From sequence record MW812343.1: a stretch of DNA of 64,000 bases; one strand, given 5' to 3'. Shown here piece by piece: positions 2,506-17,648 of the stretch. Made by a program: the position numbers and the translations under genes. Position 1 is the stretch's first letter, and the number at the start of each line of letters is the position of its first letter. The notes below the pieces were generated by a model that saw only the letters and a list, made by a program, of their open reading frames with translations, did not search any database and had not been told where the DNA came from.

Positions 2506-2517
2506 GAGGTAATACAC

Positions 2518-3516
2518 ATGGCGTTTATCTTACGTTGGACGAACCCTAATAAGCTCGCCACCACCGTGAACATTTATCGCGACACCAAAGCGTTAGTGGC
2601 GGGTTCATTACCCGCACCTATTGTCACCCTGACCAACGGGGAAACACAGTGGCGTGATACCACCGCGGTGAAAGGCGGGACGTACTATTATCTGCTTTCC
2701 GTTACAGCAAACGGAAAAACCGTTTACGGGGCACAGCAAAGCTACACCATCGAAGTGAAACGCGGCATCGGCCCCACCACGTTCCTGTGGGGTAATGATG
2801 AATACGGCTACATGGGTACCGTACCTTATGCCGAGCAAATGGACGCCTCGCAGTTTCCGGCTGCGTTCAATGCTATTAACGGCACCGCCTTTACTGATCG
2901 TGTGCCAATGATGAAGTTCTCTTATCGCGGTAAGATTCTTTATCTGCTTGACCGCACACCGATTTACCCAGCGGACGTGGCATGGAACACCTTGTACACC
3001 GGGGGTCTCATTTACGGTGTCGATGGTCCGGGGCCGGATGGTTGTTGGGGTGACTCCGCACCAACTGACCAAGGCGGAAAGATTCTGCACAACAGCGACA
3101 CATACCGCTTGCGTGTACCGCGCGGTCTCCAGACGTTCGAGCAGTCGTTGATGTTCCCGTTTGATAACACGCTGGATAAAACCAACCACGATGCGCTGAA
3201 AACTCAGCCGGAGTATAACGAGTTCAACGACTTGATTTATACCTACGTGTTGGGCTTCCCGGCAAACCGTCGTGCGCCATTAAACCGCGTGAACGCCACC
3301 ATTAACCTAGGCAACATCGCTTTCTCGTCAAGCAACACTGCCTTTAACGGGGGTGTGGCCTGTCAGGAACGGGATACGTTAACCAAGCGCGCGCTGGCGC
3401 GTGGGTGGTTTACCTCAGGGTCAAAAGAGACCAACGTCGATATGATGCAGAAGATTAACTACGTTGCGCCGACGCAAGGTTGCCGTTATATCCCCATCAT
3501 TGAGTTGCAGGAATAG
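2518..3516 (+). CDS. Putative virion protein: FN3/Ig-like N-terminal domain (type A) + domain X
   Basis: 332 aa; LRWTNPN...IYR...YYYLLS pattern is typical of FN3; paralog of 5879..6931. Confidence 0.6.
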   Translation: MAFILRWTNPNKLATTVNIYRDTKALVAGSLPAPIVTLTNGETQWRDTTAVKGGTYYYLLSVTANGKTVYGAQQSYTIEVKRGIGPTTFLWGNDEYGYMGTVPYAEQMDASQFPAAFNAINGTAFTDRVPMMKFSYRGKILYLLDRTPIYPADVAWNTLYTGGLIYGVDGPGPDGCWGDSAPTDQGGKILHNSDTYRLRVPRGLQTFEQSLMFPFDNTLDKTNHDALKTQPEYNEFNDLIYTYVLGFPANRRAPLNRVNATINLGNIAFSSSNTAFNGGVACQERDTLTKRALARGWFTSGSKETNVDMMQKINYVAPTQGCRYIPIIELQE

Positions 3517-3524
3517 GAGCGGCT

Positions 3525-4460
3525 ATGACTATCCAAATCAAATGGCCGTCACAGGCTTCTAAGGGCTTAACAAGCATTGAGCTATACCGTAAGGTGGGTT
3601 GGAACGCTACACTCGATGTAGTGAATCCTGGGACGCCTTATAAGGTGTTAGACCCGTCCGCAACATCGTTCACGGAGAGCCTCAGTGATCTGACCGAGAA
3701 AACCGTGTATTCTTACTGGGTGGCTGCGGTGAAAGGCGACGAGCGGCTTATCGGTGCGAAAATCGTCCAACCTTTCTATCTGGACACGGGTCCAGGTGCG
3801 CAAGCGCCGATTCGTGGCGACTGGATTTGCGGATACTTCGGCCGGTTAACGAAAGATGAATTCTTTAACCGTCAGGAAGTGCTGGCGCAATTAACCGCCG
3901 CGCAACAGGGCGTTTACCAAGTCGAGTCACAATACTGGCACAAATTCGTGTACCGTGGAAAAATTCTGTTCTTCCCGGAAACCCATCAGGGTTATGCCAG
4001 TTATGCGAGCGTGTACAACGCGGGGCTAATGTCAGGTGATGTCGAACTGGCTATCATTCCGAACGGTAGCACCAAGACACCCCAGAACACTCGTGTGCAA
4101 AAAGATGGCCGTCAGTACATCTTACGTATGCCGTGGGGGAATACGCCAGGCGAAGCCAACGGTTGGGGTCCGAAAGGCGAATGGTTCAACACCATGGGCC
4201 GTATGTTCGGGGGCTCAGGCAGTAACGCTGCGGACAACTTGGTCGCGGAACTGGGGGTGAGTCAACCGTTTTGGAATGACATCCCGGTCCTGTCGAGTTC
4301 CAGTTCCAACACAGACATCGGTGCGGTAGGGTTGATTCCTTTGTACGCGGCCAATGGCTTCTACTACGCGTATCCGTACCGGCCAATGGCCTTTACGTCT
4401 ATGACCGGCGTAACGACCAGCATGTACATGCGTTACGTCTTTGAACTTGTCTTACCATAA
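3525..4460 (+). CDS. Putative virion protein: FN3/Ig-like N-terminal domain (type B) + domain X
   Basis: 311 aa; IKWPSQASKGL..IELYR...YSYWVAAVKG; paralog of 6938..7822. Confidence 0.6.
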   Translation: MTIQIKWPSQASKGLTSIELYRKVGWNATLDVVNPGTPYKVLDPSATSFTESLSDLTEKTVYSYWVAAVKGDERLIGAKIVQPFYLDTGPGAQAPIRGDWICGYFGRLTKDEFFNRQEVLAQLTAAQQGVYQVESQYWHKFVYRGKILFFPETHQGYASYASVYNAGLMSGDVELAIIPNGSTKTPQNTRVQKDGRQYILRMPWGNTPGEANGWGPKGEWFNTMGRMFGGSGSNAADNLVAELGVSQPFWNDIPVLSSSSSNTDIGAVGLIPLYAANGFYYAYPYRPMAFTSMTGVTTSMYMRYVFELVLP

Positions 4461-4472
4461 CGGAGAGTCACC

Positions 4473-5870
4473 ATGGGGCTTTATGCTGCAAACTCACTGA
4501 GTTTAGTGTGCCAGCAAATCCTCCGTGATAACCCCGACCTCCCCTTTCCGCTGACCAAAGATAATATCCTTGTGCTCGGCGGACCTTTCACTACGAACCT
4601 TGGGACAAGCGGGCGAAAAACCCGCCTTGTCTTAAACGGGAAAGCCGGTGCTGGGTTTACGGGGCGCAGAGAGTTTTTCTACGACAGGATTGATTTGTCG
4701 AAACTCTTTAAGGGTATCACGGTGGTATTCGAGGCCGATGGAGCAGCTGCGACAATCGCAGATCTGTTACCGGCGTTGAATAAACAGTATGGATTGGGAT
4801 TAGAACCCGCGGATATTTCCAACGGGGATACCAAACTCGGTTACGCGTATGAGCCGACCCTTGTTGCTATCACAATAGCTGCGAGTTCTCTGGCTTATAC
4901 CGGGTCGTTGTCGGTAACATGGACACGTAAGCCTTCCGGCGTGTACCCTGACTCGGGTCCGGGTTCGAAAACGATGCTCATCGGGGATATGACTGCGGGG
5001 TACTTCGGTACCGTTACGCAGGCCGACCTTATGACGGCATCAGACTTATACGACAGTGACCGTACAACCCTCGGTAGTTATACACCGGTGCTGGACAACA
5101 GTCTTTTCTGGATTAAGTTTGCCTTGGACGGAGAAATCTATTTCTTCCCAAGCAACACACTGATGACCGGTGTGACGTGGGCGAGTCTGAACGCAATTGG
5201 TGCGGTGAAGGGCGACAGCCAATACCCGTGGGTGGTGAAGACGGGCGATGGAGAGAATACTTTCTTTGACCTGACGTTACCGCGTTCGAACACGGATGAC
5301 CCCATGGGGCCGGTACGTAACGAAGCGGGGAGTGTGTCGGCACGTATCTTCAATAAGCTGCACACCAGCGCCTACGGTACCAAGGAATGGGATACCCTGA
5401 CGTTTAACCTCGGGAATCTTTTCCTGTGGATGAACCACTACGATAACGGAACGACCGATTCGGTGTTCGTCAGTCAGATGAACCAAGCTACCGTTACCAG
5501 CACCAAAGAAACTACGGCGTATAACTGGCGACCGATGTTGAAACTGGTACAAGGTAAAGCGGTGGTCATCCCGATACGCAATGTGCAGGGTGAACCCTTC
5601 GGCCGTATTGTCCCGCCTGCGATGACGATTGACCGGTCGCGTGATCCGTCGATGCCGGTGCGGATGATTAACATCTTGGGTACGTATCTGCGCACGATTA
5701 CCGCGCCTACGATGCAACTCAAAAAACCGACGGCGGACGACATGACTCAGTCACCAAAAGCGGTTAGAGGTAGCGTAGTGGTGAAGCCGATTCTCATGCG
5801 GATTACCACAGAGTTTACGAAGAAGACGCCATTGAGCAGCCTCGATGGTGAACTCCCTGAATTTCAATAG
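4473..5870 (+). CDS. Virion structural protein: family-B anchor domain + inserted domain X + C-terminal DGELPEF
   Basis: 465 aa; GGAG RBS; paralog of 1081..2505. Confidence 0.65.
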   Translation: MGLYAANSLSLVCQQILRDNPDLPFPLTKDNILVLGGPFTTNLGTSGRKTRLVLNGKAGAGFTGRREFFYDRIDLSKLFKGITVVFEADGAAATIADLLPALNKQYGLGLEPADISNGDTKLGYAYEPTLVAITIAASSLAYTGSLSVTWTRKPSGVYPDSGPGSKTMLIGDMTAGYFGTVTQADLMTASDLYDSDRTTLGSYTPVLDNSLFWIKFALDGEIYFFPSNTLMTGVTWASLNAIGAVKGDSQYPWVVKTGDGENTFFDLTLPRSNTDDPMGPVRNEAGSVSARIFNKLHTSAYGTKEWDTLTFNLGNLFLWMNHYDNGTTDSVFVSQMNQATVTSTKETTAYNWRPMLKLVQGKAVVIPIRNVQGEPFGRIVPPAMTIDRSRDPSMPVRMINILGTYLRTITAPTMQLKKPTADDMTQSPKAVRGSVVVKPILMRITTEFTKKTPLSSLDGELPEFQ

Positions 5871-5878
5871 GTGAAATC

Positions 5879-6931
5879 ATGGCTTTAAGATTAAAATGGG
5901 ATAACCCCAACGTCGTCACCACCAAGACGACGATTTACCGTGGTGATGCACCGCTGGATAATGCGAATCTACCCGCACCTCTGGTTACGTTGGAGGCCGG
6001 GGTAAAAGAGTGGGTAGATAACGATGCCAAGTTCGGCAACACGTATTACTACATCCTCGGCAGTAAAACCGACGTCGATGAAGTATTGACACCAAACCAA
6101 AAGATTCTGGTCGCCGATAACCGGGGTGTAGGACCGTCTACGCTGGTTTTGGGTGACGACAGTTTAGGTTTCTTTGGTCAAGTGTTGTCTTCTGACTTCG
6201 TGAACTCCACACACATCCTCGCGGCGTCTGCGAACCCAACCGGTTTGCCGTCTGGGACATACACACCGACGTGGAACAAGTTTATCCGTAAGGGTAAAAT
6301 CATCTATGTTCCTGACCGGACTTTCGGGGTTTGTGCTTGGACGGCTATCTATAACTCCGGGTTAGTATACGGTGTGGATTCTACGGGGCCTGCGGATGCT
6401 AACCTGACTGGCCTTACTCCTACCAACCAGAAATCCATTATCGATTTCAAAGGGTTCAAGTATAAGGTCCGGTTGTTACGTGGGATTACGGATCGTCCAC
6501 TAACGGCGGATATTTGGAACGCCCAAAAGGGTAACCAAGAGCAGTTAACCGTTGCCGAAGACAACGAGTTTAACGACCTGATGTATCCGTTGATGTGGCC
6601 AGTGCCCGTGAAATACCAACGGTTGCCGAACATCTTTGAAGATGCGCCGGACGCGTACTTGGGGGCACCGTGGAACGCGTATGATAGCACAACGGCAAAC
6701 AACTTGACACTGACGAACCGTATTTGGTGCCAAGAACGTAACCCGGCAGCGAACGCGGCAGCATCAACGATTTGCGTACGGGGGGTGCGCTCTGCGGTGT
6801 ATGGTGCTACTTCATACCCGTACACAGCGGATCATTTGTCGGCGATGCAGTTTAATGCCGCTAACTTGTCCTGCTACTGGTTGCCGGTGTTAGAGTTGGT
6901 TGAAGAAACCGCTACTGTGGTTAAGGGGTAA
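5879..6931 (+). CDS. Putative virion protein: FN3-like (type A) + domain X
   Basis: 350 aa; MALRLKWDNPN...IYR; paralog of 2518..3516. Confidence 0.6.
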   Translation: MALRLKWDNPNVVTTKTTIYRGDAPLDNANLPAPLVTLEAGVKEWVDNDAKFGNTYYYILGSKTDVDEVLTPNQKILVADNRGVGPSTLVLGDDSLGFFGQVLSSDFVNSTHILAASANPTGLPSGTYTPTWNKFIRKGKIIYVPDRTFGVCAWTAIYNSGLVYGVDSTGPADANLTGLTPTNQKSIIDFKGFKYKVRLLRGITDRPLTADIWNAQKGNQEQLTVAEDNEFNDLMYPLMWPVPVKYQRLPNIFEDAPDAYLGAPWNAYDSTTANNLTLTNRIWCQERNPAANAAASTICVRGVRSAVYGATSYPYTADHLSAMQFNAANLSCYWLPVLELVEETATVVKG

Positions 6932-9663: not shown

Positions 9664-10311
9664 TCACACTAAGCTGAGTGCGATAAACGGCCGTTTGATA
9701 TTCAGATACGTCACATTGACATTCTTTTTATCTAAAAGATTCAACCGTTCATGGTCAGGAATCGCCGGTTCTAACTGTTCTCGGAAGAACAGGTAGTTAC
9801 GATTGTAATTAAGCGTTTGGTCGACCGGCACTTTATACACTACCGAGGAATTGTCATCCGTATAGCTCGGCCACCCGAAACGGTGTACCGCTTCGTAGAA
9901 CGAATTACGAATGAACTCATCCACACCTGAGGCTTCCATAATGCGCAGGAACATCAGGTCAGCGAAGTCTTTATCAACTGCACGCGAGAGATTACCGGCC
10001 GGGGTATCAGGGTAGACGCCAATACTTGGCTTCTTCTGGTACATCAGGTCGTGTATACACGCCGCAGCGGCCCATGGGCCGTCGGGATGCAATAAGGGCT
10101 TCAATGCATCAGGGATACTCGCTAAGTCCGTTACAAATCCTCTGGGGGCCTCTACGAACATCTGTACGTCAGGATGGATTCCTGTCAGTGAAACCATCTT
10201 GTCCATACCGGGGTGGTTACGGTATAACGTGCGCAAACTGAACGCAAAACAAAAGTCGTCGGTTAAGACAAACCACGGCGCTTGCAATACTTTATAATTC
10301 AGTCGTTGCAT
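9664..10311 (-). CDS. DUF1353 family protein
   Basis: Motifs GFVTDLASIP, AAACIHDLMY, AD..FL..M and Y.AV..FG are characteristic of DUF1353. Confidence 0.8.
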   Translation of the reverse strand: MQRLNYKVLQAPWFVLTDDFCFAFSLRTLYRNHPGMDKMVSLTGIHPDVQMFVEAPRGFVTDLASIPDALKPLLHPDGPWAAAACIHDLMYQKKPSIGVYPDTPAGNLSRAVDKDFADLMFLRIMEASGVDEFIRNSFYEAVHRFGWPSYTDDNSSVVYKVPVDQTLNYNRNYLFFREQLEPAIPDHERLNLLDKKNVNVTYLNIKRPFIALSLV

Positions 10312-10320
10312 ACGCTTTCC

Positions 10321-10920
10321 TTACTTGCTGCACACGCCAACTTTAATGGCGTAGTCACCCATCTCACGGTAGACACGGTCGTACCAGCCGTAAGTGAACT
10401 CTTCGTTCTGCACGCGCTTCTCAGAAATCTCAGTGTAGTAGGCTACCTGATGGGAAGTCAGTGCGAACATCAGACGGTTGAAACCATCCAGACCGCGGGC
10501 TTTCAGGAAGCCTTCCAGTGCAGTCATGGTTGCAGGGCCAATACCACCGTCTGCGGAGATGTCCGCATACAGTTTACCCTGACGGTTCAACACGTTCAGA
10601 ATACGCTGGAGGGACTTGATACAGTTTGCACGACCGGCGTTGATACCGAAGTCGAACATACGGTCAGCCAAAAGCGGATTCCAAGCGAGAATCCGGTCAA
10701 GGCGCATACGATCCCACCACCCTTTCTTGTAGATGTCGAGCGCCATCTGACGGGTCAGATTACGCATGTCACCGGTGTATCCGTTCTCACGCGCCGTCGC
10801 TTGTGTAATGCCGAAGTTGGTTGGGCCGCCGAGGTCGTTAGGGTTATTCACATAACCCGCTTCGATGTTAACTTTGGCAGCAATGATACCTTCCATACTC
10901 CAACGATCTACAGTTGTCAT
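10321..10920 (-). CDS. Endolysin, glycoside hydrolase family 108 + PG_binding_3 domain
   Basis: EAGYVNNPNDLGGPTNFGIT matches the GH108 EGGY..D.GG.T..GIT motif; also FDFGINAG, DGGIGPAT and FTYGW..RV. Start moved to the ATG at 10920 after GAGGA. Confidence 0.9.
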   Translation of the reverse strand: MTTVDRWSMEGIIAAKVNIEAGYVNNPNDLGGPTNFGITQATARENGYTGDMRNLTRQMALDIYKKGWWDRMRLDRILAWNPLLADRMFDFGINAGRANCIKSLQRILNVLNRQGKLYADISADGGIGPATMTALEGFLKARGLDGFNRLMFALTSHQVAYYTEISEKRVQNEEFTYGWYDRVYREMGDYAIKVGVCSK

Positions 10921-10960
10921 AACGTTTCCTCTTATAAAGAACAACAGTCATAACAACCGT

Positions 10961-11004
10961 AAGAAAAAAAAAGAAAAGTGACCCACCCCCGAGGGAGTGG
11001 GCAC
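10961..11004 (-). terminator. Intrinsic terminator closing the RiPP-like operon
   Basis: Minus strand reads GTGCCCACTCC-CTCG-GGGGTGGGTCAC followed by TTTTCTTTTTTTTT. Confidence 0.8.
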
Positions 11005-11007
11005 ACC

Positions 11008-11664
11008 TTAGGCTACACCATTTTCTTCAGCAAGCTGCTTAATCGCGGTGAAGTCTTTTTGTTCCGTCAGAATACGGATGCGCTGCTTCAACACCGACAT
11101 GACCATATGGAGTTCGTTGTCACGAGTGATGATGGTAGCATACAGCTCTTTCACATCCTCAACTGACCACGGCTCAATCTGTTCATTATTCAGTGTTGTC
11201 CAGTACAGGGGATCAACCTCTGACTGGATATAGCTTTGCATGGTATCGCGGGCTTTCTGATCCGCCTGGAACGTTTTATCGCGGAACGTAATGGGAGCAA
11301 ATCGCTCCGCATTATACTTGTCGTTCAGCTTCGGATAAATCGCATTCACTTCCTGATAGAGGTAGTTATCCGTCGAGGTCAACGCTGAGCGGACTTGATC
11401 TAAATCAATCCCTAACACATCGTTGATGAACTCTTTGGTTTTCTTCATCAGGAACGTAATTTCGACCGGCGACAGGTCAAAGCTTTTGAGTTTCTCAATG
11501 GCTTTCTTGTCACTCATCCCGTTAATCAGTTGGTAATGCAGTAACAGGCAGAAGCCGATACGGTTTTCCAACTGGTCTTGGTATTCTTCTACGAAGTTAC
11601 CGTAGCGGTCGATGCGTGTACCCCGTTCGAAATAGCGGGCTTTTATTTCGTCGTTACTAAGCAT
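11008..11664 (-). CDS. DUF4376-like protein (tail-fibre-associated chaperone-like C-terminal domain)
   Basis: C-terminal half ITFRDKTFQADQKARD...YWTTLNNEQ...VEDVKELY resembles DUF4376 (F..D..S/R...W...DN...L...L). Overlaps the upstream gene by 22 nt. Confidence 0.6.
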   Translation of the reverse strand: MLSNDEIKARYFERGTRIDRYGNFVEEYQDQLENRIGFCLLLHYQLINGMSDKKAIEKLKSFDLSPVEITFLMKKTKEFINDVLGIDLDQVRSALTSTDNYLYQEVNAIYPKLNDKYNAERFAPITFRDKTFQADQKARDTMQSYIQSEVDPLYWTTLNNEQIEPWSVEDVKELYATIITRDNELHMVMSVLKQRIRILTEQKDFTAIKQLAEENGVA

Positions 11665-12200
11665 CCGGATTCTCCTACAATCCCAAGGTCATCCAGCAGA
11701 CCGAAGTCAATGAACTGGAAATCGTTTTCCAACTCTTCACCCCAGAGCAGTTTGGCCTCTTCTGCTTCGTCGCCCATCTCTTCCAGCGTCTTACGCACGA
11801 CTTCGTATTCGTGGTAGAACGCATCGGTCAAGTGCGTACCGCGCAAGGCACGGATGGTCACACCGGGGAAGTTCAGGGCCAGACCTAACACGTTGGTTGC
11901 ATCGGATTCACCGGTAGAGCGGCGCAATACCTGCAACTTGTGTTTAGGGAACTTCGCCACACGTTCTTCGAAACCGGGATTACGCTTCTCGATTTCAACC
12001 ACAGACTGGTGCGAGTCTTCCACGCCCTGAAGAGGTATGATGACATTCAGGCCATAACGGTTCAACAGACGAATAACGTCATCGTTGAAATCTTCACCCG
12101 GCACGATCGCATGGACGTTGAACAGCTTGTGTTTACGAATGAACGCATCCACAAGGTGCACATTACGCCGAGTAAAATTGTGAATCAGCAATGACTTCAT
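11643..12200 (-). CDS. Hypothetical protein, probable degenerate radical-SAM barrel fragment without CxxxCxxC
   Basis: 185 aa; AIVPGEDFNDDVIRLLNRYGLNVIIPLQGVEDSH parallels the rSAM segment STNGTLF...LSIGVSIDGLPEVH of the adjacent enzyme. Overlaps both neighbours. Confidence 0.45.
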   Translation of the reverse strand: MKSLLIHNFTRRNVHLVDAFIRKHKLFNVHAIVPGEDFNDDVIRLLNRYGLNVIIPLQGVEDSHQSVVEIEKRNPGFEERVAKFPKHKLQVLRRSTGESDATNVLGLALNFPGVTIRALRGTHLTDAFYHEYEVVRKTLEEMGDEAEEAKLLWGEELENDFQFIDFGLLDDLGIVGESGCLVTTK

Positions 12201-13509
12201 TCGAGGCTCCGAGTTCTAATTTAAGTTTATCCTGCTGCATACGTTCGCGTACGCAGCTCGCACAGTAGCACATAGACTTATCGTGCAGGTCTGCGACATT
12301 CGTGGTACCGGTCTTCTGATACCAGTATTCAGCCACAAGCAGTTTTGCGGTTGTCCAGCCACACTGGCGACGCTCAGCGTGGTACTCTTTACGCGCTTCC
12401 AGCTCACCATCACCGTTCTCGTAAGAAGCAGCCGCACAGCTACCACACGAGTGTTTCATCGGGCAGCCTAAGCAGGTAGACGGGTAGTTGGTGTACTGCG
12501 TCTGGATTTCGTTTAACAGCTTGTTGCCGTCGATATTCACAATCTCACGTCCACGCAGTTCAGCCACCGCTGAACGGGTCGTTACGGTTGACATGAAGCG
12601 GTTACAGCCGTAGATTTTACGGTCGAAGCCGAGGCAGGTCATGTGTGTTAACGTACCGCAGTAAGGACGTACGCGGTCTGGGTGCAGGCGGGTTTGTTCG
12701 TCATCCAGCAACTTCTGACGCCAGTCCGGGTCCCACGTTGCCATGAAGTCCAGCCCATCAGGAATGATGTGGGTCAGGATATTACGCGGTGATTTGTGGT
12801 AGCCGTTATCTACCCAATAGTCGATAACGTCCATCATCTGGTTAGCGATACCCAGAGACATATCACGCGTTAGGATATCTTCGTACGTGACGTTACCGGA
12901 GATGGTACCGCCGCCCGTTTCTTTAATCAGGTGAATCATGCTCTCGCCGTAGCGCGGCAGGGTTTCACCGGTAAAGGTGGCTTTGATACCGAGTTCAGCA
13001 ATACCCACGGATTTGAGGTATTGGTAACCACGCATCGCTTGGTCGTAAGAACCTTCACGCGACGTGGTGAAGATACGATAGCGGTCATGCACTTCTGGCA
13101 GACCATCGATAGACACACCGATGGACAGGCGGTCTTTCCAGCGTTCGATGATTTCTTTACTGATAGGGCGATCGAACAGCGTCCCGTTGGTCGAGATAGA
13201 GAAGACGTACTGGCGGTTGTCGCGCGCCGCTAACTCTTCAGCAGTCTCAAAGACGGCTTTCAGAATCTTCGGCTGCATAAACGGCTCACCCCCGATGATG
13301 TCGATAATGATTTCGGCATCTTCGATGTGGCGATCGCGGTCAAAACACGCATGAATAAAATCGACAGCATCATCCACTTTGTTGTTACGTGGATATTTGC
13401 GCTCGTAGCAATACGAGCAGTCGAGATTACACGACAGGTTAGTCACAACCTGATACGTGAGTGTCGCGCGCTGTTTACGCGTCTGCGATGTAGACTTTTC
13501 TTCGCTCAT
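12163..13509 (-). CDS. Radical SAM/SPASM peptide maturase (CXXX-repeat target family-like)
   Basis: CNLDCSYC (CxxxCxxC), IIGGEP, STNG, SIDG..HD..R and GSYD. SPASM cysteines: C-x7-C...GC, CLGCPMKHSCGSC and RRQC. Extra C-terminal CYCASC. Confidence 0.92.
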   Translation of the reverse strand: MSEEKSTSQTRKQRATLTYQVVTNLSCNLDCSYCYERKYPRNNKVDDAVDFIHACFDRDRHIEDAEIIIDIIGGEPFMQPKILKAVFETAEELAARDNRQYVFSISTNGTLFDRPISKEIIERWKDRLSIGVSIDGLPEVHDRYRIFTTSREGSYDQAMRGYQYLKSVGIAELGIKATFTGETLPRYGESMIHLIKETGGGTISGNVTYEDILTRDMSLGIANQMMDVIDYWVDNGYHKSPRNILTHIIPDGLDFMATWDPDWRQKLLDDEQTRLHPDRVRPYCGTLTHMTCLGFDRKIYGCNRFMSTVTTRSAVAELRGREIVNIDGNKLLNEIQTQYTNYPSTCLGCPMKHSCGSCAAASYENGDGELEARKEYHAERRQCGWTTAKLLVAEYWYQKTGTTNVADLHDKSMCYCASCVRERMQQDKLKLELGASNEVIADSQFYSA

Positions 13510-14399
13510 TTGATTACCTCGTTGCGATGTTTACGAGCATGGATCGTGCGGTTGATGTAACGGTAGGCGTCTTGCCCAATGACTTTAGCCAGCATGTTAC
13601 AACCGCTATCGATTTCCATATCCACATCAAGCGTATAGCCGACGGAGGCATCTGAATCCAGACGAACCAAAGCACTGCACGCATTACACGACTGCTCAAA
13701 GAACTTACTGATAGAAAAACCGGTATGGCCATTGTTCATGACGTTCAGACGCTCAATCTGGTCTTCCATCTTGTTGTAGCCATACATGAAATTCATCACC
13801 AAATCTTGGTTCAGAGGTTTCTTCATGCGGTTGTCCAACAGCAGGGTCATGTCTTTGAACCCGTAGTGGTACAGCGCACGGTGCAAGTCCAGCAGGTCAA
13901 GATGCCAATACTTCTCGGCCAGTTGCTCACGAGTCACCACGGCCCACGTATGGACGTTGTTCAATGCAGCCATCACCTCAAAGGCTTCGAATGCATCATC
14001 TTCAACGACACGCCAGAGCGGACGTTCGCTCTTTTTGTATCCATCGAACGATACGCAGATACGGTTGAACTGTTGCAGCATCGGAAGGTGCTCCAAGCGC
14101 ATTTTCAGACCGTTCGTGTACAGTTCGTGAGTGAGATGTGGATAACGGGCTTTGACTTCTGCCAGCAACGGCTCAATCTTACGGGTTGCCATTAACGGCT
14201 CACCGCCCGTCCAGTTCATCCCTTGTAAAGTCGGGTATTTCTCCAGTTGTTCAAACAGCGCTTCACGCTGAATTTCCCGACCAACATCTTTTGTGTCCAT
14301 GTAATACGCTCCGCCGCAGAAACTACAATCCAAATTACACTTGGACGTCGTCACTATCGACAGCTCGGTAGGGGGACGTATTTGTGGTGCATCGGTCAT
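13506..14399 (-). CDS. Radical SAM protein with short C-terminal Cys motif (Twitch-like)
   Basis: CNLDCSFC, WTGGEP, YTNG and VSFDG; C-terminal CNAC...GC. ATGA overlap with the downstream rSAM gene. Confidence 0.88.
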   Translation of the reverse strand: MTDAPQIRPPTELSIVTTSKCNLDCSFCGGAYYMDTKDVGREIQREALFEQLEKYPTLQGMNWTGGEPLMATRKIEPLLAEVKARYPHLTHELYTNGLKMRLEHLPMLQQFNRICVSFDGYKKSERPLWRVVEDDAFEAFEVMAALNNVHTWAVVTREQLAEKYWHLDLLDLHRALYHYGFKDMTLLLDNRMKKPLNQDLVMNFMYGYNKMEDQIERLNVMNNGHTGFSISKFFEQSCNACSALVRLDSDASVGYTLDVDMEIDSGCNMLAKVIGQDAYRYINRTIHARKHRNEVIK

Positions 14400-14417
14400 T
14401 GCAGATTGCTCCAGTTT

Positions 14418-15296
14418 TTAATAGATCGCGAACAGCGGATCGTCTTCAAACTTCGAACCCACATCCAGAATGAAATCGGAGTGGTAGGCTTCGAGAATCT
14501 GATTCAGAATCGCATGGCGCTCGTTAATCCGGTTAAGGTCATCGAGGGTCACAATTCGCGACTTGATGTTTGAAACCGCCTTTTCTTCGTCAGCCGTTAA
14601 GGAGACCTTCGTCAGAAGGAAACTTACCAGCTTGCTCAGGTCAGCTTCGGTACCCGGCATTTCACCAAAGCGCCACTGCACCAGAAACTGCATCCACGGT
14701 TTGCGGATACGGCGACTGATTTCATGCGGGTCAGTGATCGCTTCAAATTGTTCATCTGCTGCATTCCAACGGAACTTGTAGCTGTACGCCAGCAAGTCTG
14801 CCAGACAGTGGATGCCGAGGGTTTCATATCCTAAGATGTGGTGGTATTTTTCCACCCCTTGGTATTCTTTCGTACCCGTAGGAACCAGGGTATACCAGAA
14901 CACGTTAGAGGAAGGATAGTCCCAACTCCATTCGCGGCGAACCATGGGAATAACGTCCAAATCCGCAAAAGGCGTGAAGATCAGTTCCAAATCCATCGAA
15001 TGGTTGAGGACGGAGTCGGTGAAGAAATACTTACCGTCAATCAACCGGCCGCTGCAACTCAGCTCGCTTTGTTCGAACTTCACATGCTGAACGCTATGCT
15101 TGCCGATGGTGTAGGTGTTCTCTTCGGTGTACTGCTTACGCACAATATCCCGCCCACGCACCTTAGGCCATTCGCCCGGCAGCATCGAAATAAGGCGGAC
15201 ATCATCCGCGACATGCGCACGCACACTGTCGAGTGATGAAATCTGTAACGGAAAGTTTTGCGTCGTGCGGTACGCCAAATGGAGGTCGTTCTTCAT
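14418..15296 (-). CDS. Hypothetical protein within the RiPP-like operon
   Basis: 292 aa; AAGGA RBS; lies between the precursors and the rSAM genes; no motif recognised. Confidence 0.8.
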   Translation of the reverse strand: MKNDLHLAYRTTQNFPLQISSLDSVRAHVADDVRLISMLPGEWPKVRGRDIVRKQYTEENTYTIGKHSVQHVKFEQSELSCSGRLIDGKYFFTDSVLNHSMDLELIFTPFADLDVIPMVRREWSWDYPSSNVFWYTLVPTGTKEYQGVEKYHHILGYETLGIHCLADLLAYSYKFRWNAADEQFEAITDPHEISRRIRKPWMQFLVQWRFGEMPGTEADLSKLVSFLLTKVSLTADEEKAVSNIKSRIVTLDDLNRINERHAILNQILEAYHSDFILDVGSKFEDDPLFAIY

Positions 15297-15313
15297 GGTG
15301 TCTTTTCCTTACA

Positions 15314-15523
15314 CTATCGGTTACCCGCCCCGTAGCTACATCCCCCGCTGCATGTCCAGCTACAGCTCCCGCCGCAGTTGTAATGAGAGAGTGGAAGACC
15401 AGCGAGGTTATTGGTCGAACTGACCGTACCGCGGGTAGCGATGTAATTGTTAGCCTGTGCGGTCGAGATATAACCTTCGACGTTTTGCACTCGATCGCGA
15501 ATGTTTTTCAATGAGATAGCCAT
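15314..15523 (-). CDS. Cys-rich RiPP-like precursor C (short core, 4 Cys)
   Basis: 69 aa; leader MAISLKNIRDRVQNVE; core CGGSCSWTCSGGCSYGAGNR; GAGGA RBS. Confidence 0.8.
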   Translation of the reverse strand: MAISLKNIRDRVQNVEGYISTAQANNYIATRGTVSSTNNLAGLPLSHYNCGGSCSWTCSGGCSYGAGNR

Positions 15524-15544
15524 AGGTCCTCACTCGATAGATTT

Positions 15545-15937
15545 CTATCGACTGCCTGAACAGCCAGAGCATCCCGTACAACTAGAACTACAGGAACCAG
15601 AGCAGTTACCTGAACACGTACCCGAACAACCCGAGCACCCGCCAGAACACGACCCAGAGCATCCTGAGCACCCGCTGGTACACCCAGAGGTACAGCTCGA
15701 CGAACAGGAAGAACCACAGCCCCCTGAGGCCGAACCGGAACAGCCACCTGAACAGCTAGAGCAACCCCAGCTACAAGTTCCGCCGCAATCGTAGTGAACA
15801 CGTCCTTGGCCGCCGAATAAGTCGACGTTATTGGTTGCTTTACCGCGAATGTATGTTTGTACGCCGCCTTCGGTTTTTAATGCGTTGGCTTCGACAACCG
15901 CAATACGGTCAGCAAGGTTTCGCAAATTGATAGCCAT
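15545..15937 (-). CDS. Cys-rich RiPP-like precursor B (CxxxC repeats, 20 Cys)
   Basis: 130 aa; leader MAINLRNLADRIAVVE; core begins CGGTCSWGC; AGGGG RBS. Confidence 0.85.
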   Translation of the reverse strand: MAINLRNLADRIAVVEANALKTEGGVQTYIRGKATNNVDLFGGQGRVHYDCGGTCSWGCSSCSGGCSGSASGGCGSSCSSSCTSGCTSGCSGCSGSCSGGCSGCSGTCSGNCSGSCSSSCTGCSGCSGSR

Positions 15938-15946
15938 AATTGCCCC

Positions 15947-16336
15947 TTAATTCGGCCCAGAGCACGCAGAGCATCCGGTACAGCTGGAAGAACACGATCC
16001 AGAACAACCGGATGTGCATTTCCCGCTACAGGATGAAGAACATGAGCCGGAGCAGCCAGAACAACCGGAACACCCGCCACCGCAGTTAGAAGAACAGCTA
16101 CCCACGCACGTAGAAGTACAGGTTCCTGAGCAGCTAGTACAGCTTGCAGAACACCCGTTCGAGCACGACCAGCTACAACTGCCACCACAGTCTAGTCGGG
16201 AGGGAGACCACCCACTAAACGAGTCCGCAGCGTTGTATGCTTTCGATGCTACCTGACCGTCTACACGAGGCCCGGTTGCATAGTTTGCTTCTACATTGTT
16301 AACGCGGTCGCGTATGTTTTTCATTGAAATTGCCAT
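15947..16336 (-). CDS. Cys-rich RiPP-like precursor A (CxxxC repeats, 21 Cys)
   Basis: 129 aa; leader MAISMKNIRDRVNNVE; core begins CGGSCSWSC; AAGGA RBS. Confidence 0.85.
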   Translation of the reverse strand: MAISMKNIRDRVNNVEANYATGPRVDGQVASKAYNAADSFSGWSPSRLDCGGSCSWSCSNGCSASCTSCSGTCTSTCVGSCSSNCGGGCSGCSGCSGSCSSSCSGKCTSGCSGSCSSSCTGCSACSGPN

Positions 16337-16350
16337 ACGTTTCCTTTGTC

Positions 16351-16391
16351 AATAAAAAAATGAGGACGCTGCCATAATGACAGCCCCTCAT
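16351..16391 (-). terminator. Intrinsic terminator/attenuator between the fibre gene and the precursor genes
   Basis: Minus strand reads ATGAGGG-GCTGTCA-TTA-TGGCAGC-GT-CCTCAT followed by TTTTTTATT. Confidence 0.65.
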
Positions 16392-16401
16392 GTAATAAGT
16401 G

Positions 16402-17601
16402 TTATCTTGTACCCGCTTCAGCTTGTACGTCGTCGCGAGAAGTCAGGCTGCTGTTGACGTGTACTGCCGCCTGAACCACACCACCGTACTGCTTGTGGAG
16501 GTAGTTCGGGTGCGGGTTGTCCGCGTTAATGTGGTTTTGCAGGTTCTGAGACAGCGTGTTGATGGAGTTCTGCAACCCAGCCACTTGCTGTTTCAGTGCG
16601 TTGACCTCACCGGAGAGATCCTGAATCTGCTGCTGCGTATCCGACCCGGCTGCTTCCAAATCACTGATGCGCTGTTTCAACCCATTGATGACTTGGTTCT
16701 GGTCATTCACTAACTTTTGAAGTTGAAGTACCAGAGAGTTAAGGTCAGCTTGTTGCAGGGCAGCTTTCTGGTAATTCAGCGCCACCGAGTTCAGCTGGTC
16801 ATTCCACGAACCAAGCGCGCTGACCACTGCATCAATACGTGCACCCAGTGCCGTGTCTGCGGCTTTCAGGTTACCGATATCCGCGAGCACCGCATTAATA
16901 GCCGTCTGCACGCTTTGAATCAGCGCACGGATTTCCGTTTCAGTCAGGCCGTTCGCTTGGTGAATATCCAGCGAGTGGACGTTCCCCTTCGAATCAATGT
17001 GCGATTGCAGCGCGGTCATCAACTGGGTCTGCATGTCAGACATGGCAGTCAGAATCTGTTGCAGCTGAACTTCGTTACCGGAGTTAATCGCATCGGTCAT
17101 CAGCGCTAACTGCGTGATGATGTACTCGAAACCAAACAGGTCACCAAGGTCTTTAAAACCCGGTGCTGATGCAAAGGTATCAGGCACGTTACGCAGGTCA
17201 GCAAAGTCCACCTTACGGTCTTCAAGGTTCGCATCGGCTAACGCTTGTTTAATCGCGGTGATGACCGCTGACTGAGGCCCGCCGACCACTTGAGCCGTAC
17301 AGACAATATCGGTTGGAATCGCACTGTTGGTGACAACGACCGCCATACAGACTTCGCGGTTCTTTGTGAGTTTCATGTACGCCGGATGGACGTAAATCAG
17401 CTCGTAGTCGGTGCCGCGGGTATAAATGGTGTTCGGTTGGTTGGCCGGACGCATACGGAACGTGTCTGCGTAGAACGGCCCTGCTGGAAAGGCGAACGCG
17501 CGGTTAACCTTTCCCCCACCTAACACAACTGGGACATTGACCGCGTTACTGGACGCGGAACCCGTCAGGTCAAGTGGGTATTGAAATAGAATATCTGGCA
17601 T
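16402..17601 (-). CDS. Short tail-fibre-like virion protein with long coiled coil
   Basis: N-terminal YPLDLTG...GPFY...GTDY domain is shared with the three large fibres. Heptad-rich middle contains RISDLE; HINADNPHPNYL fibre motif near the C-terminus. ATG at 17601 follows GGGAG. Confidence 0.7.
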   Translation of the reverse strand: MPDILFQYPLDLTGSASSNAVNVPVVLGGGKVNRAFAFPAGPFYADTFRMRPANQPNTIYTRGTDYELIYVHPAYMKLTKNREVCMAVVVTNSAIPTDIVCTAQVVGGPQSAVITAIKQALADANLEDRKVDFADLRNVPDTFASAPGFKDLGDLFGFEYIITQLALMTDAINSGNEVQLQQILTAMSDMQTQLMTALQSHIDSKGNVHSLDIHQANGLTETEIRALIQSVQTAINAVLADIGNLKAADTALGARIDAVVSALGSWNDQLNSVALNYQKAALQQADLNSLVLQLQKLVNDQNQVINGLKQRISDLEAAGSDTQQQIQDLSGEVNALKQQVAGLQNSINTLSQNLQNHINADNPHPNYLHKQYGGVVQAAVHVNSSLTSRDDVQAEAGTR

Positions 17602-17648
17602 GGCCAAACTCCCTTAGCGAGACGTCCTTGTCTCATCGTGTTAGATGG

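Follow-up and report, generated by a model that had tools for sequence, protein, structure and literature searches.

Eight closely spaced minus-strand ORFs occupy positions 11008-16336 of the window analysed here, a 64,000-nucleotide stretch of sequence record MW812343.1 from the Erwinia jumbo phage pEa_SNUABM_6. Two terminator-like hairpins flank them, and every ORF starts with ATG preceded by a purine-rich, SD-like motif. The first four gene boundaries, counted from gene A, are gaps of 9, 21, 17, and 18 nt; at the other three the genes overlap, by 4 (ATGA), 38, and 22 nt. A preliminary description of the locus had reported eight co-oriented, packed genes between hairpins, and its coordinates, cysteine counts, ATGA overlap, and folds were all confirmed; for the hairpin at 16351-16391, none of 200 shuffled sequences folds equally well. 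The cluster and its neighbours comprise the following features, given as positions in the window:

9664-10311, minus strand: DUF1353 protein, annotated 'tail assembly chaperone' (annotations of phages Huxley and pSal-SNUABM-04)
10321-10944, minus strand: GH108-type endolysin, the downstream neighbour (phrog_315; annotations of Huxley and pSal-SNUABM-04)
10961-11004, minus strand: terminator-like hairpin with U-run at the cluster end (-23.4 kcal/mol, z -4.41)
11008-11664, minus strand: DUF4376 protein, 218 aa (PF14301, 35.2 bits, cutoff 25)
11643-12200, minus strand: 185-aa partial (beta/alpha)-barrel protein (phrog_7988; AF2 pLDDT 88.7)
12163-13509, minus strand: radical SAM/SPASM-type enzyme, 448 aa, presumed cross-linking maturase (TIGR04115 129 bits, PapB 126.8 bits)
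13506-14399, minus strand: short radical SAM enzyme rSAM2, 297 aa, lacking a full SPASM domain (Pfam Radical_SAM, 44.3 bits)
14418-15296, minus strand: module-specific accessory protein, 292 aa (phrog_8030, E 4e-153)
15314-15523, minus strand: short paralogue C, 69 aa, 4 Cys (phrog_6085, E 8e-29, profile positions 1-67)
15545-15937, minus strand: Cys-repeat protein B, 130 aa, 20 Cys (phrog_6085, E 1e-49)
15947-16336, minus strand: Cys-repeat protein A, 129 aa, 21 Cys (phrog_6085, E 2e-48)
16351-16391, minus strand: terminator-like hairpin with U-run between the tail gene and gene A (-18.7 kcal/mol, z -4.06)
16402-17607, minus strand: 401-aa coiled-coil tail protein, homologue of SPN3US gp167 (phrog_2163, E 1e-107)

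A, B, and C are paralogues that have in common a non-repetitive N-terminal homology of about 50 residues; the N-terminal 50 residues of B are present in 62 phage records. In A, roughly 49 N-terminal residues are followed by an 80-residue tract that holds the 21 cysteines, mostly at spacing 4. The tracts carry cysteine at every fourth (at times every third) residue amid glycine, serine, and threonine, the proteins being 16% Cys in a Gly/Ser/Thr matrix, and in an alignment of relatives the cysteine register is kept while the intervening residues vary among Gly, Ser, and Thr. Protein C has the N-terminal part and junction motif of A and B, and its Wellingtonvirus copy retains just two of the four cysteines. 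No conserved cleavage-type motif lies between the N-terminal part and the Cys tract; the second half of the supposed leader, together with the start of the core, is instead the motif that joins the fibre shaft to a C-terminal Cys-repeat in other phages. Records of SPN3US-like phages mostly miss the two long Cys-rich genes or annotate them wrongly: the gene B region carries no annotation in MW812343.1, and gene A in relatives either lacks annotation or is annotated on the wrong strand.

That the cluster encodes two radical SAM enzymes, one of them SPASM-type, is borne out by cysteine motifs and homology. The relatives alignment of the 448-aa enzyme reveals the three cysteines of a radical SAM motif and, towards the C-terminus, seven further cysteines that never vary and one that seldom does (C27, C31, C34, C284, C302, C346, C349, C355, C358, and C383 are invariant; C292 is kept in at least 90% of relatives), and its C-terminal extension adds C414, C416, and C419. 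Its top library matches are the CXXX-repeat maturase family TIGR04115 and PapB, the latter with a cutoff of 340, and both scores are under cutoff. A comparison with the CXXX-repeat models, suggested in the preliminary description, gave 129 bits against a curated cutoff of 350, which rejects membership of the enzyme in TIGR04115, and 14.7 bits for protein A against the TIGR04114 cutoff of 20. The best solved relative is PDB 5wgg/5why (E 5e-13), deposited as 'Radical SAM domain protein', which we take to be CteB. The nearest characterised relatives of the enzyme all modify Cys-containing peptides or proteins encoded alongside them. A GGEP motif and the cysteines C21, C25, C28, C241, and C267 never vary among relatives of rSAM2, and most of them also have C238; the best matches of rSAM2, all weak, are to PapB, HxsC, twitch-type, and viperin-type enzymes.

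The 292-aa protein is rare, with only 49 representatives among 1.84 billion proteins. Its AF2 model (pLDDT 89) has no significant PDB match, and a viral structure library returned its own orthologue only. Homologues adjoin Cys-repeat fibre proteins at loci L008 (BLASTP 3e-11), L096 (1e-18), and L097 (1e-5), and at L173-L176 proteins of similar length occupy the same position and have a C-terminal sequence that, judged by eye, is like that of the 292-aa protein. The 185-aa protein is confined to the jumbo-phage clade, with just 20 homologues, all phage-type. It had been described as a degenerate radical SAM barrel, and this holds at the level of fold compatibility (Foldseek matches to TIM 1b9b, E 5e-4; SuiB 5v1s, E 1e-3, TM 0.46; QueE, TM 0.44) but not in profile comparison, where hhalign against radical SAM families gave 4% and 0.2%. 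The DUF4376 assignment of the last gene stands; the protein also has a weak match to phrog_1807, 'tail fiber protein', and a DUF4376 protein likewise follows the radical SAM pair at L175 and L176.

A strict association of the enzyme with Cys-rich proteins is evident from the survey of homologous loci. The eight-gene cluster is kept in all 62 deposited SPN3US-like jumbo phages, and the possibility that such radical SAM pairs commonly occur without Cys-rich ORFs was not borne out: a Cys-rich protein and the radical SAM/SPASM enzyme co-occur in 62 of 62 jumbo-phage records and in 80 of 80 viral loci, counting an interrupted tract in L127. Outside jumbo phages the closest relatives of the enzyme are all in phages or prophages, and at most of these loci the Cys-repeat domain either ends a fibre-type tail protein, at its C-terminus, or is a small gene abutting a fibre gene, with the Cys-repeat then followed in most by a 292-aa homologue and the same enzyme pair. 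Fused forms include a 384-aa P2-type tail fibre with a Pfam Phage_tail_fib N-terminus and a Cys-repeat end (Campylobacter prophage), a 302-aa Deferribacter protein adjoining a GpJ-type tail protein (with a sub-threshold Pfam match to 'Phage tail repeat like', 16.7 bits vs 27), a 568-aa Cys-repeat-ended protein in a T4-like contig, a 247-aa protein adjoining a lambda-J-type gene (L096), and a 401-aa protein whose N-terminal part matches tail-fibre PHROGs (L097). These fused fibre-type proteins end in a Cys-repeat domain with the same junction motif as A, B, and C. In the split form, at L173 and L174, an uncalled Cys-repeat ORF of 76-79 aa overlaps or abuts the stop codon of a T7-type tail-fibre gene and is followed by a 274-291-aa protein (phrog_8030-like by eye) and then the enzymes, which is the gene order of the pEa_SNUABM_6 cluster.

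The module recurs within tail or baseplate blocks of P2-like, lambda-like, T7-fibre-type, T4-like, siphovirus, and jumbo phages. At the Campylobacter prophage locus L009 a DUF1353 protein likewise follows the radical SAM pair. True TIGR04115 enzymes in gut-phage contigs (434-586 bits) adjoin baseplate, Dit, and tail-fibre genes, as well as Cys-repeat proteins of 100-800 aa, and at L013 a Phage_tail_fib protein lies directly upstream. Phage tail modules are a frequent setting of true TIGR04115 members, a point made nowhere in the literature searched. Small-peptide clusters of this family with a linked exporter were seen in only two bacterial genomes, one of which (L014) has an FtsX permease and a CAAX protease.

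Immediately upstream of the cluster are homologues of SPN3US gp167-gp170, which proteomics assigned to the tail (PMC5694885, PMC10052503), so that the reported location downstream of tail-fibre genes has experimental backing for the upstream gene. Table S2 of PMC10052503 lists SPN3US gp167 under Tail, with 880 PSM in virions and 5 in heads without tails; a second study also finds it in virions (PMC5694885). The homologous 401-aa protein is the likely partner of the Cys-repeat cluster. SPN3US gp161-gp165, homologues of the enzymes and accessory proteins, were undetected in virions, with gp163 classed as non-virion (PMC5694885, PMC10052503), which fits maturation factors rather than structural parts. 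The same data are uninformative on the A, B, and C ORFs because the spectra were searched with Cys carbamidomethylation fixed and against either the deposited annotation or a local list of unstated content.

Taken together, these results lead us to lean towards a tail-associated product, a fibre or tip protein that the radical SAM enzymes would staple after translation. The fibre fusions, the split abutting ORFs, the gp167-gp170 homologues directly upstream, the presence of true TIGR04115 enzymes in tail modules with exporters only in two bacterial loci, and the strict co-occurrence of enzyme and Cys-repeat protein all argue for this, as does the precedent of CrpC and CrpA, in which a SPASM enzyme cross-links a large Cys-repeat protein and not a short peptide (PMC13692751). 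A, B, and C would then be small fibre-type proteins, presumably made late and together with the tail genes just upstream, in which the N-terminal part of about 50 residues probably serves oligomerisation or attachment and is followed by the conserved junction motif and a Cys tract that would form a rod. Since the characterised relatives include CteB, PapB, and CrpC, we propose by analogy that the radical SAM/SPASM enzyme uses S-adenosylmethionine-derived radicals to link Cys sulfurs to carbons of nearby residues, yielding a ladder of small thioether rings. rSAM2 may install a further modification of unspecified kind, and the 292-aa protein could serve the module as its own helper, folding the substrate or presenting it. 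The stapled protein would join the tail and there most likely attach to the gp167-type protein; the fibre protein of other phages itself ends, at its C-terminus, in this domain.

Several observations count against such tail maturation. The terminator-like hairpin parts the cluster from the upstream tail gene, tail markers were found by crude BLAST at only 34 of the 80 viral loci, L098, L123, and L167 yielded no annotatable tail context, and at L175 and L176 the module and a small stand-alone Cys-repeat protein lie beside S-AdoMet lyase and nuclease genes, with no recognisable tail genes. Structure searches revealed no recognisable chaperone fold in the 292-aa protein. The core of the Cys-repeat proteins is devoid of Asp and Glu, which rules out acceptor chemistry of the PapB type, and A, B, and C are short, with three paralogous leader-like N-termini as in RiPP precursors and CrpA/CrpB.

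Comparison with known systems places the cluster near several of them. The CXXX-repeat system of NCBIfam/TIGRFAMs, defined in silico and with an uncharacterised product, comprises a TIGR04114 target (Pfam PF27846), the TIGR04115 radical SAM/SPASM maturase, and a second maturase, TIGR04119. Like the cluster, it sets a radical SAM/SPASM enzyme beside proteins in which every fourth residue is Cys; the cluster enzyme has TIGR04115 as its top library match, and the family to which A, B, and C belong, phrog_6085, matches the Cys tracts adjoining true TIGR04115 enzymes as well. However, the PapB score is equally good, the enzyme falls in a sister clade to TIGR04115 with prophage enzymes from L008, L009, L011, L096, and L117 (129-190 bits), the place of a TIGR04119 partner is taken in the cluster by rSAM2 and the phrog_8030 protein, and the junction motifs are unlike. 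CrpC of Methanococcus voltae is a SPASM radical SAM enzyme that forms ranthionine thioether cross-links in the large Cys-repeat protein CrpA (PMC13692751, 2026). In both systems the substrate is a protein with repeated C-terminal Cys motifs, no exporter is needed, and paralogous substrates have a common N-terminal part (about 47 residues in Crp, about 50 in A, B, and C) (PMC13692751). The two differ in several respects: the Crp setting is archaeal and cellular and that of the cluster is a phage tail, CrpC has a predicted RRE domain whereas the radical SAM motif of the cluster enzyme begins at residue 27 and leaves no space for an N-terminal domain, and Crp repeats span 17-34 residues with acidic or amide acceptor motifs, in contrast to a period of 4 with only Gly, Ser, or Thr between cysteines (PMC13692751).

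PapB (freyrasin) and CteB (SCIFF) are the best library and structure matches, and the cluster enzyme has the three-Cys motif and a full C-terminal Cys set. It scores far under the family cutoffs (340 and 425) and lacks an N-terminal recognition domain, and its substrates are far longer, with about 20 Cys and a core without Asp/Glu acceptors. The His-Xaa-Ser system, itself uncharacterised, offers a parallel in composition, with a repeat substrate HxsA, a large SPASM-type HxsB, a small radical SAM HxsC, and a function-unassigned HxsD; the 448-aa enzyme scores 83 bits against HxsB and rSAM2-type enzymes 33-49 bits against HxsC, all far under cutoffs, and the repeat is of His and Ser rather than Cys. 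The gp38-type adhesins of T-even-like phages are fibre-tip proteins with glycine-rich domains, encoded just downstream of fibre genes. By analogy, A, B, and C resemble them in being small and encoded right behind a fibre gene, and in joining an N-terminal part for attachment to a low-complexity C-terminus rich in Gly, and gp38-type tip proteins and assembly factors, like the Cys-repeat, may be a separate subunit or part of the fibre. To our knowledge, neither these adhesins nor such assembly factors require enzymatic cross-linking.

The preliminary description had framed the cluster as a RiPP-like system, a reading that the radical SAM pair and its strict co-occurrence with Cys ORFs support in part. 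A, B, and C would then be leader-plus-core precursors of free peptides, cross-linked by both enzymes and kept in the cell or freed at lysis to act on the host or competing bacteria, rather than virion parts. The paralogous N-terminal parts followed by a Cys-rich core, the place of the enzyme in the peptide-maturase branch of SPASM enzymes, the genuine exporter-linked small-peptide clusters of CXXX-repeat family members in bacteria, the endolysin gene just downstream, and the setting of L175 and L176 all suit such peptides. The leader-plus-core framing fares poorly, however, against the fibre-type junction motif and the recurrence in tail blocks of so many phage types; as described earlier, neither profile libraries nor annotation reveal, in the cluster or on either side of it, a gene for a peptidase, a transporter, or immunity, and a bacteriocin freed with its own progeny would bring little gain to an obligately lytic jumbo phage. 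We therefore regard free peptides as unlikely.

Still less probable, in our estimate, is a transient assembly device, in which the cross-linked or metal-loaded Cys-repeat would nucleate or chaperone trimerisation of the neighbouring fibre protein and later be removed or left behind, like C-terminal intramolecular chaperones or downstream-encoded assembly chaperones. Fibre chaperone domains are characteristically C-terminal (endosialidase-type and T5-type fibres), the position immediately after a fibre gene is the usual site of fibre assembly chaperones, and DUF1353 and Phage_tail_APC proteins are encoded close by. Two dedicated radical SAM enzymes would, however, be a high cost for a disposable element, profile searches detected no protease or autocleavage domain, and the tracts are long (80-360 aa) with a strongly conserved Cys register.

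The cysteine-rich matrix devoid of acidic acceptor residues would also suit metallothionein-like proteins that bind metal or iron-sulfur clusters and are not cross-linked, the enzymes acting on, for example, the fibre protein or a small molecule; the cross-links are, after all, proposed from homology. We judge this very improbable given the strict pairing of Cys-repeat proteins with this enzyme clade, the adjacent-encoded Cys-containing substrates of its nearest characterised relatives, and a register that is conserved while the residues between vary.

Finally, the notion that low-complexity DNA has left the long Cys-rich frames open by chance and that the opposite-strand ORFs are the real genes draws on RefSeq annotation of opposite-strand or other-frame ORFs (Huxley gp176 and gp177; SPN3US gp166) and is already contradicted by the sequence comparisons. 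Substitutions relative to Huxley fall 17/5/102 at codon positions 1/2/3, a bias that alone cannot exclude antisense coding since one antisense frame has the same wobble position; but the sense frame is the sole frame open across the entire gene in 7 of 7 genomes compared, every Cys column is kept out to Wellingtonvirus, and ATG starts and SD-like motifs are in place. This openness, the N-terminal homology of A, B, and C (all three matching phrog_6085), and in-frame fusion to long fibre proteins elsewhere lead us to take these frames as real genes.

Of the three products first offered (virion-associated, intracellular, or released by lysis), the tail-module context favours the virion-associated one, and a free peptide is less favoured. 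The cluster probably represents an undescribed way to cross-link tail fibres chemically, and not the source of a secreted antibiotic-like peptide.

All eight minus-strand ORFs of the preliminary description are present in the window, which matches Erwinia phage pEa_SNUABM_6 (MW812343.1), a 240-kb Machinavirus and SPN3US-like jumbo phage, at 100% identity. In gene order the cluster comprises:

11008-16336, minus strand: the whole cluster
15545-16336, minus strand: A and B, the two long Cys-rich genes (129 and 130 aa)
following B, minus strand: C (69 aa), a paralogue of A and B, and then a 292-aa protein (phrog_8030)
13506-14399, minus strand: rSAM2, a 297-aa radical SAM enzyme
12163-13509, minus strand: rSAM/SPASM, a 448-aa radical SAM enzyme
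11643-12200, minus strand: a 185-aa protein
last in the cluster, minus strand: a DUF4376 protein

Each ORF starts with an ATG preceded by an SD-like motif; the first four intergenic spacers measure 9, 21, 17 and 18 nt, the three remaining junctions overlap by 4 nt (ATGA), 38 nt and 22 nt, and each border of the cluster has a hairpin with a U-run that is much more stable than shuffled sequence. Upstream, the same strand encodes the homologues of gp167-gp170 of the related jumbo phage SPN3US, one a coiled-coil protein of 401 aa and the other three very large; downstream are an endolysin of the GH108 type and a DUF1353 protein, which carries the annotation "tail assembly chaperone". Neither the eight cluster proteins nor the flanks include a leader peptidase, a dedicated exporter or an immunity gene, in agreement with the lack of protease and exporter remarked on from the sequence alone; the window contains no tRNA genes. 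The DUF1353 gene lies near the cluster in Machinavirus (9664-10311 in the window) and directly after the radical SAM pair in a Campylobacter P2-like prophage (L009, 7068-7433), and may belong to the module as one more recurrent component. The SPN3US gene next to the DUF4376 end of the cluster is gp160 (L007, 7084-7611), whose product is among the most abundant head proteins, with more than 300 copies per capsid (PMC5694885); since Machinavirus has the endolysin at this neighbouring position, the downstream border of the cluster has been rearranged between genera.

The cores of A and B are built from Ser, Gly, Cys and Thr over 80 aa, with 20-21 Cys and one basic residue; the Cys are spaced by 4 and sometimes by 3 (15 of 20 Cys-Cys intervals are 4 in A, and 13 of 19 in B), and Asp and Glu are missing from all three cores, that of C included. 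All three proteins have a common non-repetitive N-terminal part of ~50 aa (50-52 positions aligned, 17-19 of them identical) with no other match within the window. The profile of phrog_6085, a group of phage proteins of unknown function, matches A (2e-48), B (1e-49) and C (8e-29), as well as the Cys tracts in 9 of 10 other phage proteins tested. With the TIGR04114/PF27846 repeat model A reaches 14.7 bits, below the cutoff of 20, and B and C give no match; a Pfam search likewise returned no match for the Cys repeat. A related 568-aa protein of a T4-like contig (L011) scores 20.7 bits with the repeat model and carries a precomputed PF27846 label.

The two long Cys-rich genes are systematically mis-annotated. 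The RefSeq record of the related jumbo phage Huxley leaves both unannotated and calls the opposite-strand gp176 and gp177 instead (L001, 13495-14232), a wrong-frame ORF, gp166, is annotated over the Cys-rich genes of SPN3US (L006, 3130-3941; its three Cys-rich ORFs lie at 3130-3522, 3533-3937 and 3953-4159), and the window's own GenBank record has no feature over B; proteomics against annotations that lack these ORFs could not have detected their products. Substitutions relative to Huxley in the Cys-rich frame fall 17/5/102 on codon positions 1/2/3; we set this bias aside as a test of strand, since one antisense frame has the identical wobble position and bias, so that the bias alone is indecisive. 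The Cys-rich frame is the sole end-to-end open frame in 7 of the 7 genomes compared, and this openness, together with the common N-terminus, the phrog_6085 matches and in-frame fusions elsewhere, identifies the Cys-rich ORFs as genes.

The rSAM/SPASM enzyme carries the radical SAM three-Cys motif at residues 27-34, and C27, C31 and C34 are invariant, as are C284, C302, C346, C349, C355, C358 and C383, with C292 present in at least 90% (20 homologues, down to 31% identity). A motif that begins at residue 27 leaves no room for an N-terminal domain, and the RRE that precedes the motif in sactipeptide and SCIFF systems is absent; a fold search found none elsewhere or in the 292-aa protein. The Pfam SPASM model has no match in the enzyme at E up to 0.1. 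The score against TIGR04115 is 129 bits in two stretches, below the curated cutoff of 350, with true members among the fetched loci scoring 383-586 bits. The enzyme does adjoin proteins with a Cys at every fourth position, as expected of a TIGR04115-family enzyme. The kinship with the CXXX-repeat models that had been proposed is thus borne out by the motif, the C-terminal multi-Cys region and the adjacent repeats, and is not borne out by the TIGR04115 cutoff. The PapB score is 126.8 bits (cutoff 340, not reached), and the Cys-X3-Asp/Glu acceptor motifs of PapB-type ranthipeptides are missing from cores that have no Asp or Glu; the SCIFF/CteB-type family TIGR03974 gives 63.4 bits against a cutoff of 425. 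The best solved relatives are 5wgg/5why (E 5e-13) and an anaerobic sulfatase maturase. From these best family and structure matches, rSAM/SPASM is a SPASM enzyme of the peptide/protein-maturase type, yet one that lies outside every curated family. The jumbo-phage enzymes are ~60 aa longer than their prophage relatives and have a C-terminal extension with three close extra Cys (residues 414-419), which might bind a further metal site.

The second radical SAM enzyme, rSAM2, lacks a complete SPASM domain; two of its C-terminal Cys are invariant and a third is common. The second maturase TIGR04119 has no match in the eight proteins at E up to 0.1, nor did a looser limit of E 1 reveal one in the 292-aa or the 185-aa protein. 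A proposed link between rSAM2 and an invariant Trp at the start of the Cys tract was dropped, as L009 and the phage loci L173-L176 have rSAM2 and no Trp. T4-like contigs encode radical SAM-like fragments, of 56 aa with the Cys motif and of 156-157 aa (L012, 1507-2177; L011, 2325-2798), between the Cys-repeat fibre protein and the intact enzymes; these small ORFs may be remnants of a third or split radical SAM gene.

After the enzymes, the 292-aa protein is the module's most faithful companion in the clade of the window. It has no Pfam, NCBIfam or PDB sequence match and just 49 representatives among 1.84 billion proteins; its model (pLDDT 89) is a curved beta-sheet with a helical bundle that has no significant structural neighbour and contains no RRE, peptidase or known chaperone fold. 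The 185-aa protein, restricted to the jumbo clade, had been described as a degenerate radical SAM barrel. Its model is a partial (beta/alpha) barrel that is compatible with this description and matches TIM barrels and the SuiB and QueE radical SAM cores at modest TM-scores; a sequence-profile link to radical SAM enzymes was not found, the protein has no cluster-binding Cys, and BLASTP gives no more than a borderline match (E 0.04) with the long rSAM2 of L011. Because TIM barrels match as well as SuiB and QueE, the description is possible at most. The DUF4376 protein, which recurs after the radical SAM pair in two other phage contigs (L175 and L176), and the gp167 homologue have no informative solved relatives.

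The rSAM/SPASM gene is found in 67 deposited phage records. Five of them are distant gut contigs; the other 62, among them Machinavirus, Seoulvirus, Wellingtonvirus, CR5 and phiEaH2, are SPN3US-like jumbo phages, and the N-terminal part of B likewise maps to 62 records, exactly the jumbo clade. Conservation of the cluster across jumbo phages, a question raised by the preliminary description, was confirmed by a synteny survey, the whole cluster being kept out to Wellingtonvirus and SPN3US. Alignment of the rSAM/SPASM enzyme yielded 80 viral loci, 79 of which have a Cys-repeat ORF by a strict pattern and the 80th an interrupted one; their Cys-repeat proteins range from 48 to 809 aa with up to 126 Cys. 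The gut-type viral contig L161 encodes a protein of 522 aa with 126 Cys (24%; 5039-6607). Another gut-type viral contig, L167, has two adjacent Cys-repeat proteins (12441-14777); it also encodes a 364-aa protein with 81 Cys, preceded by a second ORF that has a radical SAM Cys motif. A search of genome contigs was dominated by generic SPASM enzymes, such as PqqE-like ones, and did not pick up the prophage relatives, its informative loci being L013-L015 and L048 only.

The nearest non-jumbo relatives of the enzyme (31-39% identity) belong to prophages or phage contigs rather than to typical bacterial gene clusters, and lie mostly in tail modules, as in the following loci.

Arrangement of the module in other phages
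L009, Campylobacter P2-like prophage: 384-aa tail fibre with a Phage_tail_fib (PF12571) N-terminus and a Cys-repeat end; then a 250-aa protein, two radical SAM enzymes, DUF1353 and a sheath gene
L008, Deferribacter: GpJ-type tail protein, 302-aa protein with a Cys-repeat end, 250-aa homologue of the 292-aa protein (E 3e-11), both enzymes
L011, T4-like contig: 568-aa protein with a Pfam CXXX-repeat label, the repeat at its end
L096: lambda-J-type fibre, 247-aa Cys-repeat protein, phrog_8030 protein, enzyme
L097: baseplate gene, 401-aa fibre-type Cys-repeat protein, rSAM2, phrog_8030 protein, rSAM/SPASM, sheath gene
L173 and L174: uncalled 76-79-aa Cys-repeat ORF overlapping or abutting the stop codon of a T7-type tail-fibre gene; then a 274-291-aa protein in the same position (phrog_8030-like by eye) and the enzymes

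A homologous Cys-repeat domain therefore occurs in proteins with recognised tail-fibre domains (L009 and L097); the N-terminal part of the 401-aa protein of L097 matches phrog_3904, phrog_4120 and phrog_15437, and the single Pfam signal in the 302-aa protein of L008 is a sub-threshold "Phage tail repeat like". The module lies within a tail or baseplate block in the window, after the gp167-gp170 homologues, and in L008, L009, L013, L096, L097, L099, L107, L111, L131, L139, L173 and L174. Crude BLAST tail markers were recognised in 34 of the 80 viral loci, and PHROG scans resolved further locus groups except L098, L123 and L167, in a survey that is a sample of loci and not a census. On contigs L175 and L176 (170 and 104 kb) the module is not in recognisable tail genes: it stands immediately after a pair of S-AdoMet lyase genes and an Endonuclease_NS gene (1234-4206 and 1269-4241), and consists of a small Cys-repeat protein, a 216-218-aa protein in the same position, two radical SAM enzymes and DUF4376, an arrangement in which SAM-degrading and SAM-consuming enzymes adjoin.

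The fibres also bear on how A, B and C are to be read. The small proteins of the window and the long fibres can be aligned over about 20 residues ahead of the tract and over the first Cys motifs, and the leader-core boundary that had been drawn in A, B and C is by this alignment a conserved shaft-to-repeat junction instead. The Cys-repeat domain is fused to fibres in some phages and is a small gene beside a fibre or tail gene in others, which argues that A, B and C act physically with the adjacent tail protein. We therefore predict, with slightly better than even confidence, that A, B and C are tail-associated proteins.

Published proteomics of SPN3US covers the neighbouring genes. The virion proteins gp167-gp171 and gp173 are assigned to the tail (PMC5694885 Supplementary Table 1; PMC10052503 Table S2), with 880 PSM for gp167 in virions against 5 in tailless heads (PMC10052503 Table S2). 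Products gp161-gp166 were undetected, and gp163, the rSAM/SPASM enzyme, is a non-virion protein (PMC5694885, PMC10052503); this absence fits enzymes or helpers that are active before or during assembly. The searches used annotated proteins and fixed Cys carbamidomethylation, and since the A-C ORFs lie outside the annotation they are uninformative on A-C. For the chemistry, the SPASM radical SAM enzyme CrpC was reported in 2026 to install ranthionine cross-links in CrpA, a large Cys-repeat protein (PMC13692751), and CrpA and its paralogue have their first 47 residues in common (PMC13692751), a direct precedent for protein-sized substrates with leader-like N-termini. A literature search returned no paper on this cluster, on the CXXX-repeat family in phages or on tail fibres as targets of radical SAM enzymes; the cluster goes unmentioned in a preprint on phage BGCs, and a cyanophage paper simply has a radical SAM gene in its list of "antibiotic synthesis" genes.

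Among the alternatives, a free RiPP-like peptide, the product envisaged at the outset, is unlikely, and bacterial relatives provide the comparison. In Clostridium sp. 19966 and a Bacillota MAG, a 58-65-aa peptide is encoded with a TIGR04115-TIGR04119 fusion and an ABC exporter (L014, 3212-12958; L015, 4423-12013); the TIGR04119 part of the L014 fusion scores 281.7 bits, and this Clostridium locus also has a second ABC/FtsX system and a CAAX protease. A DDE transposase adjoins the cluster in L015. In contrast to these bacterial CXXX-repeat clusters, the window has no exporter, protease or TIGR04119, and this counts against a free peptide; the module of L175 and L176, placed beside S-AdoMet lyase and nuclease genes, speaks for one and against a tail role. 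The enzymes of the viral loci include bona fide TIGR04115 members (434-586 bits), whose nameable neighbours are always baseplate wedge, Dit, minor tail or tail-fibre proteins; in a Ruminococcaceae MAG a Phage_tail_fib protein is directly upstream. With exporters in the bacterial loci and tail genes in these, the missing exporter and protease are what the phage tail form of the system typically shows. A role for A, B and C as a transient assembly element is a still less likely reading, and the remaining rivals carry smaller weights again.

By analogy with its characterised relatives, the SPASM enzyme would join Cys sulfur to carbon of neighbouring residues and so form a ladder of small rings along the Cys tract. 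Judging from the gene context, the product may be a stiff rod at or on the tail fibre, which in the jumbo phages would probably dock on the gp167-type protein through its N-terminal part. We propose more tentatively, at a little under an even chance, that in many phages, from P2-like prophages to 240-kb jumbo phages, the distal part of the tail fibre is a cysteine-ladder rod with covalent staples put in by the phage's own radical SAM enzymes; that the "CXXX-repeat RiPP maturase" family serves mainly in tail-fibre maturation, with the exporter-linked bacterial clusters as a side branch; and that in SPN3US-like phages the rod is split into the subunits A, B and C, which escaped annotation and proteomics.

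If true, this would be the first case of a phage receptor-binding or tail-fibre structure cross-linked by enzymes, and phage structural biology would gain a new kind of post-translational modification: viruses would use the radical SAM chemistry of antibiotic-like peptides to harden or shape the virion component that makes first contact with the host. The CXXX-repeat systems, an orphan family defined from databases, would acquire a function, the absence of exporters in these clusters would be explained, and the well-studied SPN3US model would gain unannotated components. The proposal would also flag tail-fibre tips that are systematically missed by structure prediction and standard proteomics, which assume free, alkylatable Cys. 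Even on the rival reading, it would be unusual for a RiPP-type pathway to be conserved throughout a lytic jumbo-phage clade.
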